Below, one piece after another: positions 25,335-31,699 of a DNA stretch of 64,000 bases. Source of the DNA: Zancudomyces culisetae HAW-14-8 (Eukaryota; Fungi; Kickxellomycota); the NCBI GenBank assembly GCA_052426225.1, contig JBNJNM010000011.1, positions 186,001 through 250,000 of the forward strand, in the 5' to 3' direction. Numbering within the stretch: position 1 is the first letter of the stretch; every line of letters begins with the position of its first letter. The notes beneath the pieces were generated by a model. That model was not told the origin of the DNA. It made no database searches and saw nothing but the letters and a program-made list of their open reading frames with translations. Both the position numbers and the translations under genes were made by a program.

Positions 25335-27510
25335 GGATGGATGGCTGTGTGTATTCATAGTTAGAGAACATCTTGTAGTTGATATTTTTATTATTAGTTA
25401 ATCGAGTTGGTAGTTTAAAAAAACATGCAAGTGTATATATAGTACTGAATAAAACTAGTTCAGATAGATGTATGGTGGCAATATGGTCATTTTGTATTTT
25501 TGGTATTATTTTTTTCTCTTCCTCTTGAATGAAAACCAGAGGCAGGAAAATGCTGAACTTAACTCATTATCAAAAATGTGTGTGCCGAGAAAACGCGTCA
25601 GTTGGAGAAATGTACCCTTATATACTGGAGGTCTCCATGCTTGGTGTCGTTTGAGCTTGTCGCATTCAGTCTCTGCGTGCAGCTGCCAAAATGTTGGATT
25701 AAACGGTACAGTTCGCTTTTGTTGTTCTTGTTACTCTACATAAAGGATGCCACTACACGCATGGCTATGTGTGTAGTGGTTGGGTGTGCTATGTGGTGAA
25801 TGATCTGCGTAGCTCAGGTTGCCGATAGTATTTTTTTTTAAAAAAAAAGACTAATCATTGCCAAATACATACTTTGTATCGCTACTGTTCTTGTAAGTTT
25901 AAAAAAATTAAAGGCTAGTTAGTTGTTCATTGTGTACAAAATACAAGAGAACAGGGCAAAGGTAGTTAAACCATACCCATTTCATCACGAAACTTTATGC
26001 ATATCACGTTTTCGTGAGCAGTTTTTAGAATACATGTTTTAAGATATTTGGTTCTAACACTTTATCACATTTTTATTAGCTGTAGCATGGTGGTTGAACT
26101 CTGACAGCTATCGCCCTGCCTTTACACGTTGATGATATCAGGTGCTAATATACTTTTTGGTACCATTTCTGGCACACTAACCCTAAAACTTGGTATACAC
26201 CGTCACCCACTCTGCACCTATGCATGATTTGCGTGTCAATCTGTGTTATATAATAATTTTATTGGGAAACAACTGGCATATTATTATTACAGCAGCCTAT
26301 AAGCGCAAAAACAAAGGTGTTTTTTATCAAAGCTCTGTTTTTAATATACACATTACCTTTATTTTTGTTTTTTTTTTCTCTAACCTTGGTTCCTTTTTTG
26401 CACTCATTTTTTTGCGAAAATAGATGCAAGGTTTCTGAAAAAAAAATTGACCAACAATTTACAAGCTGGAGAAATGTTAATTGTTCAACGCAATCAAGTC
26501 AAAAAATAACCACAAAACAAAGTAAATAAAGACTAGCTATAATTAAACCAAAATGTTCATCTCAGCCCAAATACAAAGATATTTGCCCAGTTTCGCCCTT
26601 TGGGACCTTTAAGGTGATTTGCTTTGACACCTTATTCTAACATCTGAAACCTGGGTTTTCACGCAAAAAATAAAATAATAAAATTCAGACAATGTTCACA
26701 CAAATATCAGCAATAAACTTTGTCTTACGCAGGTCCGTGGTAAAAAAAAGCATAGCAAAACAAAGCATAACAGGGCTGACTTGATATTCAATTTTTAAGT
26801 GATACAGAGCATCTGAGTACCAAATATACTCGGATGGTTACCTCTTTCCACAAAAAGCTCTATATCTCATACAAGGACCAGAATACTATCCATCACACAG
26901 CTCAATTTAGCCATCCTCCAATAATGTAGTAAAATACGAAAAGCTACCTAAATATCACTACCTATACCCTGGAGACAACACACATCAGTATTATGGAAAG
27001 TTTCTTGATATCGTAAATACCGGTATAGTTGCCTTACACGTATAATTTAAATATTCTCGACTGAACATAAGGGTTACTTTATGTGTAGAGTATATAATTT
27101 TTTATGGTGATTCGGTTTTTTAGAAAATTCTATTATTAATTTTGAGGTTTAGAACGATCTGATAGAAAACATATACATGTAAGGATAAAGAGAACAAACG
27201 ACGAATATATTTGAACTTTAGGGTAGAACAAGAATATTTATGTATGCTTATGTGTGTTAGGAATCGATCGTATCACATTTTCATACTTACAAGATATTAT
27301 TCCAGGCAAAAGAAATTGTTGAACCTGAACATTTTGATTCATAGTAAGGGAGTAGAGCAAGAATAGTTACACAGATCGGGACGACTGAAATAAGACCCAG
27401 TCTCGAATATTATTGTATAAAAAGTCCTATCGGTTAGAAACCAGTTTCTGAAGAAAGAGTGGGAAAAAAATAATAAAGAGAATAAAGAAGGAGGGAGGAT
27501 CAACATCAAG

Positions 27511-30500
27511 ATGTATGCTGAATCCACAAGTCAACACTACAGGGAAAATGACATCACCATCTTAGAAATAGATGGGATGTATAGTACATCCTGTGTTGAA
27601 AGTATAAAAACAATACTGCAAGCCGCCGAAGGAGTATTTGATATAAGCGTTGATTTAGATACAGGAGAAGCGACTATAGTACATTGCCTAGAAAGCATAA
27701 CCAGTGATGACATATTGAGTATAGTTGTGAGAATGGGGTATAGTGCAACTATAAAGCAAACTGAGAGGCCTCTGTATAATCATACATCCATAAAGCTTAG
27801 CAACAGTTTACAGGTGTGCAGTGAACTTGATGGCGAGGATTATGCGCTGCAGAATAATGAAAGCACTTTGAGCAACTTTGAACATATTCCACAAGATAAT
27901 AGCTCATACTTGGAAATAAAACTAAAATTATCTCCTCCAATAAAGGGAATTATAGAAGGAGAGTGTATAAAAAACCTTGTCCTTGGAAAAAAAGGGATCT
28001 TAGGAGTAAACGTATGTATATTCACCTCAGAAGTGTTGGTAAGATATATACCTACATGTGCCGGTCCAAAGGAGGTAATTTCTAAAATAGAAAGACTGGG
28101 ATATTCAATAACTGAAAAAAATAAAGATGAGTTGTTGGTAAATGTGAAAGAGTCATTCTTCTGGATTATGAACGAATCTATAAACGAACTAGTTAAAAGG
28201 AAAAAAAAAGATAAAAACAGGATGCTGAAGTCGGTATATCTATCAATACCAACAATCTTGATAGCTTCCATACTTAGTATAAAAGAATATACATCGTCTG
28301 GCCTATATTCATTTTTTAACAGATATCTATTCGAGGGTATACGACTAAAGGCAATAATTTCGTTGCTTTTCGCTACAACATCACAAATCTTTTTTGGAAT
28401 CAGAATTTACCGAAAGATGGTGCTTTCAATTTTAAAGAAAAGGATGGATGTAGACTTATTATATGGAGTTGTGTTGATTCTCATGTTTTTGGAAGGAATA
28501 GTAGCTTTGTTGATAAAGCAAGGTGATACAAAACACTTCTTGGATTCTGTAGTTATTATCACCACGTTATTCTTGCTACAGGAATATATTGAATCAGCAA
28601 AGAAACTACACACATATAATATGTATCAGAAGAATATAGAAAAATCAAAAATGGGATACTTGGTTGTATTGGAGAACACCGGAACTGACACTGTTTCAAA
28701 TAAACTAGGGCTATACAATGTACAGGAGTTGCAGATAGGCGATTTGATACAACTAGGAGTTAACGAAGTAGTACCTAGTGATGGAATTCTAGTGAGTAAA
28801 ATCGGTGTATTCAGCAATCTTGACTTTATGGGAAATAAATCTCCGCTACTAAAACAAAGAACCGATTCAATAATCGCGGGTTCTGTAAATATTGGCGAGG
28901 TGTGTTATATCCGGTTAACCAAAAAGATAAACGAGTCGATACTGGATACTATATTTCAAAGCATTTACTATATTTCAGAACACAGCAAGTCCAAGTTTCA
29001 ACTACTAACCGAAAATATTGATAAAGTGTTTTTTCCATTAGGGGTATGTATGTCAATACTGGTATTTATAATATGGACCAATCTAAATATTTTTAATTCC
29101 ACGTCATCCAATTTTTCCCAAAACAAACTGATACTGATTCTCTTTAAAGACTATTACATAAATACACGCAATAATGAACAAACCGAAAACGTGATACCTG
29201 CTGGAGGAATAAGTAAAAGTGGAATAAACAACCTTGTATTTAATGGAATAACTCAGGCCACAACAAGTGCTTTAAGTATAATCATTATCTTATGTTCGAT
29301 ATCTTTATCAAAATACGTCAACTATATCATAAACTTGAGTGTTTGTGCTCTTGCAAAAAGCGGGATATTAATAAAAGACAAATATTTGGTATTTAGCAAG
29401 GCTGCAACCTCAAATGTGGTTGTATTCAAAAGAACGGGTGTCTTGACTGTCGGGAAACCAAGGGTGCTAGATTTTGTCTCTGATTTTAAAAGCCAAGTCA
29501 GAGTACCCAAGGAATTTGAGGAATTTATTATTGGAGAATTAACCTGTTACTTTGAGAACATTGTTAGTAGTGCTGAAAGTATTAAAAAAAACCACATTGC
29601 AAAGGCTATTGTAGAGCATATCCAACTCAAAAAACCACCACCGCAAAAATACGTTACGCAAAATAAGGATCCAGTAATCTACCCCCGTATCACCAGGGAT
29701 AACAGTTGTCAAAACTCTGCTGCTTCATCTGAAAATGAAATTAATATCAGCCTAGCATCGAACAATGATAGTATTTCAGAAAAAAGAAATCCTGGTGTTA
29801 GCTGTATAAACTCACTTTGTTCGTTCTCCATAGGCTCAGTAGCTTCGTCAGATATAAAACAAGGCTATGGTAGTTCCTTTTATAGTGTGGGTGATGAGAC
29901 AAAAACTAAAGACAACTCCCTACTAGATACCTTTCATGTTGTCAAAGAAAACTATGATATGACTGGAAAGGAGGGTTGTGCAACTGATAAAATGTTTAAA
30001 AATATCATAGACTCATCTGTGAACCCCGAAAACCCGGACGATTGTATTCAGCAAATTTTAGATATTCCAGGAAAAGGGATGGTAGTAACAATTAGCCCAT
30101 CTGTGTTTATAAAAAGTCATCTAAGCACCAACTCTGATTTAAAGGCAATCAACCTGTATATAGGGGGAGTAAAATGGCTGATAGAGAGTGGATTCAAACT
30201 TTCCGAACTCATGCAACTAAAAATTTCTAATTGGGAAAATCAGGGGCTAACGTGTATTGCTGTCGGAATTTCAGAAGTGTTGGAGAAGCGGCCATCCAGA
30301 GTTAAAAATGAGTGTATCTCAGAGTACTTTTTAAGATCAATATACACTCCAAATGGTGACCTCAAACAAAGCACTCATAAGACAAACATGAAACATGTTT
30401 CTTTTTTTGAGAACGCAGATGAGGATAAAGATGGCGACTATGATATCGGTAACAGCTATGTGATATGTGCCTATTGTGTAGGAGACAGTGTTAGGGAAAC

Positions 30501-31392
30501 TACCAAACATGTTGTAGAGTATTTGAAGTCAAGTGGTGTGCAGGTATGGCTTGTTTCTGGTGATTCAAATGCAAGTGTCAGGAATTTTGCGAGTAAAGTT
30601 GGCATAGAGGAGTGTATAGCTGAGACTCACATCAATAAGGTGCCTCAAATAATTAAGTTACTACAAGAAAATAGGATTCAGAGCAATGACACAGGTGTCG
30701 AAAAATCCAATGATGGAGGTGAATCTGATATTTTTTCCGCATCCAAGACATATATAAGTTCCTTTCGGAATAATAAAATCAAGTTATCGACTGATTACAA
30801 TTTGGAAAACTACGAGTCGTTGACGCAAAAAACACTGAAAGGTACATCTTTGCCTGCAAACAGGAATCGGTTTTATAACAAAAGGAAAAATATTTTTGCG
30901 CAAGCATTTTATGGGACTTTAGACTCTCTTTTCTATCTTGTGAGATTAGTGAAGAACAAGCTAGCTAAGAAAAGTCACAATTCTTTTTGCAAAAACAATA
31001 GCAATAAAAAATCTAGGGTTATATTTGTATCCAACAACAGTACAATGGACAGTGTCTTTAATGCAGCTGATATTGGGATCTTGATGCACACAGAAGTAGA
31101 ATTAGCACGTTTAGGTAATGCTCCGATTGTTGTCCTGAATGAAACTCTCTCTTCGGTTCTGAGAATTATACTATTTGTAAAAGCTACAAATGTTTATGTA
31201 ATTGTGTGCATATTGTTGTGTTCTATTTACTTTGCGCTTGTAGCGATAGTTGCAACTGGTATCTTGGTTCCTGGTTCTGGGATTGGTGCCGACCCTGTAC
31301 TCTCACAGGGCTTTTTAATAGCTTTAAGTGGTTTTATGCATTTATTGAATATTGTTTTTATAAAATATTGCAGAGTTAGACTTTTGAGTTAA
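27511..31392 (+). CDS. P1B-type (Cu-ATPase/Ccc2-like) ATPase homolog with degenerate catalytic motifs (putative pseudo-ATPase)
   Basis: Two HMA-like domains, TM region, VPSDG and AGSVN (A domain), VVVFKRTGVLTVGKP (normally FDKTGTLT.GKP), PGKG, GDSVR, LVSGD, AADIGI. Domain order matches P1B ATPases. Confidence 0.9.
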   Translation: MYAESTSQHYRENDITILEIDGMYSTSCVESIKTILQAAEGVFDISVDLDTGEATIVHCLESITSDDILSIVVRMGYSATIKQTERPLYNHTSIKLSNSLQVCSELDGEDYALQNNESTLSNFEHIPQDNSSYLEIKLKLSPPIKGIIEGECIKNLVLGKKGILGVNVCIFTSEVLVRYIPTCAGPKEVISKIERLGYSITEKNKDELLVNVKESFFWIMNESINELVKRKKKDKNRMLKSVYLSIPTILIASILSIKEYTSSGLYSFFNRYLFEGIRLKAIISLLFATTSQIFFGIRIYRKMVLSILKKRMDVDLLYGVVLILMFLEGIVALLIKQGDTKHFLDSVVIITTLFLLQEYIESAKKLHTYNMYQKNIEKSKMGYLVVLENTGTDTVSNKLGLYNVQELQIGDLIQLGVNEVVPSDGILVSKIGVFSNLDFMGNKSPLLKQRTDSIIAGSVNIGEVCYIRLTKKINESILDTIFQSIYYISEHSKSKFQLLTENIDKVFFPLGVCMSILVFIIWTNLNIFNSTSSNFSQNKLILILFKDYYINTRNNEQTENVIPAGGISKSGINNLVFNGITQATTSALSIIIILCSISLSKYVNYIINLSVCALAKSGILIKDKYLVFSKAATSNVVVFKRTGVLTVGKPRVLDFVSDFKSQVRVPKEFEEFIIGELTCYFENIVSSAESIKKNHIAKAIVEHIQLKKPPPQKYVTQNKDPVIYPRITRDNSCQNSAASSENEINISLASNNDSISEKRNPGVSCINSLCSFSIGSVASSDIKQGYGSSFYSVGDETKTKDNSLLDTFHVVKENYDMTGKEGCATDKMFKNIIDSSVNPENPDDCIQQILDIPGKGMVVTISPSVFIKSHLSTNSDLKAINLYIGGVKWLIESGFKLSELMQLKISNWENQGLTCIAVGISEVLEKRPSRVKNECISEYFLRSIYTPNGDLKQSTHKTNMKHVSFFENADEDKDGDYDIGNSYVICAYCVGDSVRETTKHVVEYLKSSGVQVWLVSGDSNASVRNFASKVGIEECIAETHINKVPQIIKLLQENRIQSNDTGVEKSNDGGESDIFSASKTYISSFRNNKIKLSTDYNLENYESLTQKTLKGTSLPANRNRFYNKRKNIFAQAFYGTLDSLFYLVRLVKNKLAKKSHNSFCKNNSNKKSRVIFVSNNSTMDSVFNAADIGILMHTEVELARLGNAPIVVLNETLSSVLRIILFVKATNVYVIVCILLCSIYFALVAIVATGILVPGSGIGADPVLSQGFLIALSGFMHLLNIVFIKYCRVRLLS

Positions 31393-31699
31393 TTTCAATT
31401 TTTGATAGTGGAGGGGATAAAGATAGAGGTAAAATCCATGTGTGAATATATATAAATATGTGTTTGTGATCAAGAAAAGGTATTGAATGTAAAATATAAT
31501 ATAATACGTCAACAATAAGTTGATGAGATTTAGATTTGTGCATAAGTTTATTGTATACACTGTTGGTTGTAGATTACTAATTTTATGAAAGTTCACTCTT
31601 GATATGACAGTTTCAAAAAAACTGTAAATAAAAAACTTGGTGAGTAGATAACAAAAATGGTGAGGAAAAAAAATACTAAAATAGGTAAAAACGAGCTGG

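Follow-up and report, generated by a model that had tools for sequence, protein, structure and literature searches.

Copper-transporting P-type ATPases of the P1B-1 (Cu+) group, which include ATP7A/ATP7B, Ccc2, CopA and HMA4/5, have the same domain order as the protein described here: two HMA domains, the MA-MB helices, M1-M2, the actuator (A) domain, M3-M4, the phosphorylation and nucleotide-binding (P/N) domains, and M5-M6. To our knowledge, P-type ATPases are treated as obligate enzymes. Zancudomyces culisetae (Harpellales, Kickxellomycotina) lives as an obligate symbiont in the guts of mosquito and black-fly larvae, and a 64,000-nt stretch of the genome of strain HAW-14-8 (GCA_052426225.1, contig JBNJNM010000011.1, here C11:186001-250000; hereafter the window) contains an intact gene for a P1B homolog that is a probable lineage-specific pseudo-pump. 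In comparison with the Cu+ P1B-1 ATPases, every working signature of this protein is substituted, three inserts of ~50-125 amino acids, predicted to be disordered, are present, and identity to all canonical members is ~22%. Its relatives in a second, non-Ccc2 clade of fungal Cu-ATPases (Coemansia KAJ2077987.1, Kickxella XP_051390584.1) share the two-HMA architecture and a core of similar size, but they are fully canonical and ~1000 amino acids long, whereas the Zancudomyces protein has 1293 amino acids with the three inserts and its branch exceeds theirs in length by a factor of more than 10.

Degenerate P-type ATPases have been described as flippase modules in the P4-ATPase-guanylate cyclase chimeras of Cryptosporidium, Plasmodium (GC-beta), gregarines and Tetrahymena. 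In these modules, the Asp of DKTGT and the A-domain Glu are altered, yet the module is retained and needed (PMC13466520). A literature search turned up no other published precedent for a probable pseudo-P-type ATPase. The P4 modules are fused to a working cyclase and conserved across lineages. In contrast, the Zancudomyces P1B protein stands alone without an attached enzyme; more of its motifs are gone, and one species is so far known to have it.

The open reading frame (ORF) comprises 1293 codons at 27511..31392 on the plus strand, with an ATG start, zero internal stops and a single exon; the remaining two frames of this interval contain 133 and 108 stops. At the local composition (35% GC), the probability that 1293 random codons stay open is ~6e-46. 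Pfam matches were obtained for HMA (residues 18-77, 1.5e-9), E1-E2_ATPase (residues 402-526, 2.7e-16) and Hydrolase (residues 965-1039, 5e-6). The closest solved structures are copper pumps, namely ATP7B, plant HMA4 and CopA, with PDB matches to 7si3 (5.5e-34; the entry reads 'P-type Cu(+) transporter', and Foldseek names it ATP7B) and to 7xuk (3.9e-33; 'Copper-transporting ATPase 2'). All eight hydrophobic helices are still present in the hydropathy profile. Colinear homology, eight-transmembrane topology and A/P/N architecture, drawn from Pfam, the PDB, the tree, hydropathy and the structural model, place the protein in the P1B family by descent. The first-pass annotation of the window had described an uninterrupted 3.9-kb ORF in Cu-ATPase domain order, which agrees with the 1293 open codons and their colinearity with Cu+ P1B-ATPases.

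Motifs were placed by alignment with the genome's own canonical pump, bacterial CopAs, the closest eukaryotic relatives and 49 canonical P1B pumps. The substitutions that the first-pass annotation had listed, in TGE, CPC, DKTGT, SEHP, GDGxND, YN, MxxSS and both HMA CxxC pairs, were each recovered by alignment at the positions collected in Table 1. Direct reading of the DNA likewise gave the AAA codon for Lys640 at 29428, and the statement that xGD alone survives was upheld, SGD (S1016-G1017-D1018) being the only motif retained. Beyond this list, the conserved P-domain Lys is also gone, with V1044 in its place, and the M4 block 'CPCALGLATPTA..VG.G' has almost entirely disappeared: the M4 invariants after CPC (G/L/P/T/A/V/G/G) are all replaced, and the M4 Gly and Pro at the equivalents of G809 and P813 are gone. 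In the sequence of the N-domain nucleotide site, SEHP reads KKNH, with the His replaced in register by Asn694 and a His one position later (H695); G854-x-G856 and G885 are retained.

The protein thus lacks the phosphorylated Asp, the A-domain TGE loop for dephosphorylation, and the Mg2+-binding GDGxND hinge with the conserved, phosphate-binding Lys that belong to a working P-type ATPase. In place of the Cu+-specific signatures of the P1B-1 group, CPC/YN/MxxSS read CSI/YF/IALSG and the HMA CxxC pairs read STSC/EGEC. Because the Asp, TGE, GDGxND, Lys, all three membrane Cu+ signatures and both CxxC pairs have been lost, the protein, judged by its sequence, cannot run the E1/E2 aspartyl-phosphate cycle or bind or carry Cu+ at the canonical sites. 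As an enzyme homolog without catalytic residues, it falls under the definition of a pseudoenzyme, and on its sequence the gene is classified as a putative pseudoenzyme derived from a P-type pump, so far in one species.

How such a protein has changed was examined by comparing its erosion with that expected under neutrality. An alignment of 49 working pumps has 113 invariant columns, defined by conservation of 90% or more, of which the protein keeps 52 and has lost 54%. For such a loss, neutral drift would need ~0.35 substitutions per site. A stop would result from 4.7% of the point changes possible in this ORF; with an indel to substitution ratio of 15:123, taken from flanking intergenic DNA between two strains, ~0.145 disabling events are expected per substitution. 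At 0.95% neutral divergence, the ORF would then remain intact with a probability of 0.005, and this falls to ~1e-84 once divergence reaches the level that a 54% loss implies. Since the probability of neutral survival is effectively zero at the observed divergence, selection would have kept the frame while the sequence changed. The earlier claim that the pattern is not random decay is therefore sustained: more than half of the invariants have changed, yet the frame is open in three haplotypes, where a neutral ORF would be broken by ~1% divergence. Furthermore, erosion is uneven along the protein. It was measured per domain as identity to second-clade pumps divided by the identity of the working paralogue (Ccc2) to the same pumps. 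The best-kept domains, with ratios of 0.87-1.14, are HMA1, HMA2, the MA-MB platform and N-core b (part of the N-domain), and the start of the P-domain is also among the best-kept parts. The most eroded domains, with ratios of 0.33-0.48, are M4, the C-terminal part of the P-domain, M5-M6 and the A domain.

A P1B pump fold was also predicted from the sequence. Residues 140-1293 were modelled with AlphaFold from an alignment of 56 homologs; the model reached a predicted TM-score of 0.71, with a predicted local distance difference test score (pLDDT) of at least 70 in 716 of 1154 residues. Confident regions comprise HMA2, the membrane domain and the A/P/N cores, and the three long inserts are predicted to be disordered; in the model, HMA2 adopts a beta-alpha-beta-beta-alpha fold with pLDDT 82-93. 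The top Foldseek matches of the model are ATP7B (6.7e-33) and CopA 7r0g (TM-score 0.80, normalised to target).

In a maximum-likelihood tree, the degenerate protein is nested in the second fungal Cu-ATPase clade, with a support of 99 in the Shimodaira-Hasegawa-like approximate likelihood ratio test, and its terminal branch is saturated, reaching the 10 changes per site that the program allows at most; the median is 0.58. Placement with the Ccc2 clade was rejected by the approximately unbiased test (p = 0.005), a value to be read with the long branch in mind and with the tested group having been named after tree inspection. An origin as a recent duplicate of Ccc2 is ruled out by the tree and this test. 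An exhaustive phmmer search gave as best matches from other species Coemansia sp. RSA 988 KAJ2077987.1 (2.7e-46), Kickxella alabastrina XP_051390584.1 (4.8e-32) and an ENA protein. Among the top 150 matches, only the species' own mis-modelled fragment is devoid of every motif. The members of the second clade have two HMAs and ~1000 amino acids; a search with the Coemansia protein found the clade, in canonical form, in Kickxellales, Basidiobolus, Mortierellales, Glomeromycota and chytrids. No second-clade member was found in the annotated proteins of five Smittium species, all of which have a Ccc2-type pump. A word-indexed protein search returned bacterial CopA only, at ~21% identity; a scan of JGI metagenome contigs for orthologs gave no match; and an exact-match search with the neighbouring histone H3, used as a synteny route into Smittium, returned only unrelated fungi and Z. 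culisetae. Orthologs in related proteomes, whose presence the first-pass annotation had left to be checked, are thus missing from every other annotated proteome, including those of the five Smittium species, and a long-term ratio of non-synonymous to synonymous substitution rates (dN/dS) is for this reason not computable. The degenerate gene, the only second-clade member in its genome, would be the sole, extremely diverged survivor of a paralogue that sister Harpellales appear to have lost.

The copper-pump inventory was drawn from the 27.09-Mb genome in 25 contigs; the PacBio-HiFi assembly of strain HAW-14-8 was reported with 26 contigs and 35.6% GC (PMC12611240). RNA data for the strain are deposited under BioProject PRJNA1254182, with predicted transcripts at Zenodo 15271765. 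Among 26 genome matches to the P-type A-domain profile, only two are P1B genes. The second of these, a canonical CCC2 paralogue of the kind whose presence had earlier been left open, is a Ccc2-type pump of 1346 amino acids at C21:569196-573236 (L025:1697-5737), 56-60% identical to Smittium proteins. Its motifs are complete (TGE, CPC, DKTGT, SEH, TGD, GDGIND, YN and MALSS), and it has three HMA repeats with canonical CxxC, plus a further match to the HMA profile, the fourth, without CxxC. In this fourth HMA-like repeat, 'GMGEEDEG' stands opposite the expected GMxCxxC. An Atx1-like HMA gene is also present, at C11:2131425. Judged by gene content, copper pumping in Z. culisetae would be left to this single canonical Ccc2-type pump. 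Elsewhere in the genome, C21:836004-836306 carries a weak Sod_Cu match (E 2.2e-5, 180-amino-acid frame) alongside three strong Cu/Zn superoxide dismutase loci at other positions. Two near-identical pairs of P-type ATPase genes with equal scores were also observed (C6:2375469 / C12:487355 and C12:784928 / C6:2073986, with frames of 1407/1407 and 1508/1507 amino acids), which suggests segmental duplication or an uncollapsed haplotype.

Present-day constraint was assessed between two strains. The ORF carries 9 substitutions (2.3/kb) and 0 indels, and the neighbouring genes PNP, GH17 and RPL2 have 2.2-2.6 substitutions/kb. Intergenic DNA shows 7-13 substitutions/kb and 15 indels in 13 kb, so that the gene is 3-4 times less diverged. 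The intergenic rate would predict ~29 non-synonymous changes, and seven were seen (P ~1e-6); the probability of 0 indels in the ORF is 0.011. A shortage of synonymous changes was observed as well, with 2 against the 8-12 expected from the neighbours or intergenic DNA (27511-31392 compared with L026/L027:8861-12742), and the flanking DNA diverges normally.

Altogether, we consider it reasonably probable that the gene descends from the second (non-Ccc2) fungal Cu+ P1B paralogue and encodes a protein that is dead as a catalyst and blind to copper, yet is kept intact, with eight transmembrane helices and with its HMA, A, P and N domains still folded. Selection would have kept the frame over a very long period of sequence change, and frame preservation implies that the protein may have, or until very recently may have had, a non-catalytic function. 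The likeliest mode would be protein-protein interaction at the membrane, where the protein would scaffold or regulate others, perhaps in the Atx1-Ccc2 copper route, and a transport role would be unlikely. Interaction is favoured over transport because erosion is heaviest along the ion path and has largely spared both the HMA folds and the MA-MB platform. These two elements are the chaperone/HMA docking surfaces in structural work on CopA and ATP7B. A fuller version, in which selection made a stand-alone pseudo-P1B-ATPase that regulates or scaffolds the Atx1-Ccc2 route through its HMA folds and MA-MB, perhaps as part of a wider Harpellales habit of keeping dead pumps, given the second degenerate ATPase (ENA-like) in this genome, is tentative and rather unlikely to hold in all its parts. 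From the interpretation given in the first-pass annotation, the dead pump and the non-random nature of the loss stand, and the particular roles it named (scaffold, regulator, sensor or leak channel) are without support.

A reading of the locus as an artefact, with an assembly or sequencing error masking canonical motifs or with a spliced gene whose motif exons lie elsewhere, could draw on the older annotation, in which the locus was modelled as a spliced 515-amino-acid 'hypothetical protein' (OMH79051.1, OMH80241.1). That model is wrong, because homology is colinear along the whole unspliced ORF, including the stretches it removed. No second copy of the ORF was found in the genome. In the assembly of another strain, GCA_001969505.1, the ORF on two contigs is 99.74-99.77% identical, with 9 and 10 base differences, zero indels and no motif affected, and with the same Lys-containing KRTGV motif as in HAW-14-8. 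The frame is accordingly intact in three haplotype copies across two independent assemblies. The HiFi assembly and the two short-read contigs are base-for-base alike at every motif, and sequencing error is ruled out since both contigs of an independently sequenced strain share the open frame and the motifs. The artefact reading is effectively refuted. The GCA_001969505.1 assembly carries this 22-kb locus twice (LSSK01001684.1 and LSSK01001253.1; 1 nt apart in the ORF, I413L), probably as two alleles or through a duplication made in assembly, and the HAW-14-8 assembly carries it a single time. It is also improbable, though less decisively so, that the protein is still a transporter or channel with a remodelled ion path and no aspartyl-phosphate chemistry, acting either passively, as a leak or carrier, or with nucleotide binding alone as its driving force. 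The eight retained helices, the N-domain GxG and P-domain SGD, and the predicted retention of the fold would suit such a role. However, erosion peaks in the ion path from M4 to M6 (ratio 0.33-0.47), where the M4 Pro is gone and only one Cys, one Tyr and one Ser are left of the Cu+ ligands, and coupling is impossible with Asp, TGE, Lys and GDGxND all lost. In addition, we know of no P-type ATPase that works as an uncoupled channel without toxins.

A more serious alternative is that the gene is on its way out: a second Cu-ATPase would have become dispensable in gut Harpellales and been lost outright in Smittium, and the Zancudomyces copy would be a relic free of constraint, its frame spared so far by chance and any earlier non-pump function at an end. 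This is judged possible but unlikely, and most of the observations that favour it also weigh against the retention of a functional pseudo-pump. Within the ORF, the changes between strains are 2 synonymous to 7 non-synonymous, a polymorphism ratio (pN/pS) of ~1 from only 9 changes, against 16:4 synonymous to non-synonymous in five pooled neighbour genes (Fisher p = 0.01). A pN/pS of ~1 fits relaxed constraint, on tiny counts, the oddity being the synonymous deficit, and the counts are too small to choose between weak purifying selection and recent relaxation. No ortholog is annotated in other Harpellales, and none outside Z. culisetae was found by phmmer among 1.84 billion representative proteins; with the second clade unannotated in any Smittium, the gene would be dispensable in the sister genera as far as annotated proteins go. 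The Z. culisetae genome is under reductive evolution, with ~20% of BUSCO genes missing (PMC12611240), and a second degenerate P-type ATPase (ENA-like, L043) is present in the same genome. Moreover, the predicted structure is compatible with the P1B fold and is not proof of it, because the model leans on an alignment of canonical pumps, and the scaffold or regulator role is put forward as a hypothesis. The proportion of motif residues kept (11/30) does not differ significantly from that of other invariants (40/82). Consequently, in the earlier claim of 'concerted motif loss', the losses are real but specific targeting of the motifs is rejected, and the pattern amounts rather to a general erosion that took in the entire catalytic and ion-transport core. 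Against a gene on its way out, the frame has outlived the loss of 54% of the invariants, which is impossible under neutrality, so that any relaxation would be at most very recent (< ~0.5% divergence). The locus is also a trough of diversity: the three haplotypes differ by 0 indels, and non-synonymous changes are ~4 times below the intergenic expectation. In addition, the peripheral domains of the protein are still at normal paralogue-level similarity.

Table 1. Features of the degenerate P1B-type ATPase gene and its surroundings (positions in nucleotides of the window; residues numbered in the 1293-amino-acid protein).
Feature	Position	Strand	State of motif or segment	Evidence
Degenerate P1B-type (Cu+) ATPase homolog, intact single-exon ORF, 1293 aa	27511..31392	+		Frame identical in two contigs of the other assembly
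HMA1 fold, aa 18-77	27562..27741	+	CxxC -> S25-T-S-C28 (nt 27583-27594)	Pfam HMA 1.5e-9, alignments
HMA2-like ferredoxin fold, aa ~145-205	27943..28125	+	CxxC -> E149-G-E-C152	Alignment to HMA of 7si3 chain; AlphaFold
MA, MB, M1, M2 transmembrane helices, aa 239-362	28225..28596	+		Hydropathy, per-domain identity, AlphaFold helices
A (actuator) domain, aa ~380-495	28648..28995	+	TGE -> M440-G441-N442 (nt 28828-28836); preceding DES gone too	Pfam E1-E2_ATPase 2.7e-16, alignments
M4, aa 585-607	29263..29331	+	CPC -> C595-S596-I597 (nt 29293-29301)	Most eroded segment, identity ratio 0.33
Former phosphorylation motif	29428..29442	+	DKTGT -> K640-R641-T642-G643-V644; no Asp available	AAA codon at 29428 read from DNA
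N-domain SEHP	29584..29595	+	SEHP -> K692-K693-N694-H695	Alignments
Insert 1, aa 714-838, N-domain	29650..30024	+	Ser/Asn-rich, predicted disordered	AlphaFold pLDDT <50, composition, gap in all homologs
N-domain GxG	30067-30081	+	Kept: P853-G-K-G-M857	Alignments
Insert 2, aa 928-977	30292..30441	+	Predicted disordered	AlphaFold, alignment
TGD motif	30556..30564	+	S1016-G1017-D1018, sole surviving catalytic-core motif	Alignments
Insert 3, aa 1064-1134, P-domain	30700..30912	+	Asn/Ser/Lys-rich, predicted disordered	AlphaFold, composition, alignment
Hinge	31030..31050	+	GDGxND -> S1174-N-N-S-T-M1179, then D1180	Alignments
M5, aa 1230-1248, and M6, aa 1266-1284	31198..31362	+	YN -> Y1240-F1241; MxxSS -> I1270-A-L-S-G1274	Hydropathy, alignments
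Zone of low between-strain divergence (gene, ~300 bp upstream, ~200 bp downstream)	27217..31605	.		Two-strain comparison

Several other degenerate pump homologs were encountered. In the same genome, L043 (C10:965500-972500, minus strand) is an intact 977-amino-acid ORF for an ENA/P2-like degenerate P-type ATPase, 26% identical to the canonical P2-type pump on C15 (L041:1964-4813), in which TGE reads TGA, PEGL reads PKGL, DKTGT reads DKTGV (Asp kept), KGA reads RGV, TGD reads TED and GDGVND reads GSKLGD. A candidate ENA-like pseudo-pump on C15 was discarded, its 1227-amino-acid ORF being a canonical P4 flippase; the actual candidate is the one on C10. Two prokaryotic P1B paralogues, from L029:8001-10400 (JGI metagenome 3300022562) and a Logan SRR22388025 contig, show SPY, DKTGI, TGN and SNSVNN (P0249) and TGN, SPC and EKTGT (P0274); each lies within a few kb of a protein with the full HMA/E1-E2_ATPase/Hydrolase set, assigned by domains and not by motifs. 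A eukaryotic P1B homolog of 1089 amino acids encoded by a 47-kb gene (P0295; L030, GCA_964442445.1, OZ207727.1:1923148-1986351) shows TGD, VPY, DKTGI, GDGNKD and YH. P0249, P0274 and P0295 were rejected as orthologs, two being prokaryotic and one coming from a eukaryote with a 47-kb gene. Like the Zancudomyces protein, these three and L043 have intact ORFs with several motifs substituted; unlike it, they keep the phosphorylated Asp (or a Glu) and part of the other motifs. A literature search of incomplete coverage found no paper on a stand-alone pseudo-P1B pump, which is absence of evidence only. The terms 'pseudoenzyme' and 'P-type ATPase' occurred together in that search in one unrelated paper only, and a review of open questions on P-type ATPases does not use 'inactive', or 'pseudo' beyond a species name (PMC10654040). 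Motif-poor pump homologs may thus be less rare than the literature suggests.

The locus is also an annotation trap, given that naming by homology would yield 'copper-transporting ATPase' and that the older annotation mis-spliced the gene. For the mosquito-gut fungi, the inventory suggests that copper handling has apparently been reduced to one pump. If the pseudo-pump is expressed and selected, it would indicate that the architecture of a pump can be put to uses other than transport, and it would provide a naturally occurring, completely 'dead' mutant in which to study what the HMA domains, the MA-MB platform and the headpiece do beyond pumping.

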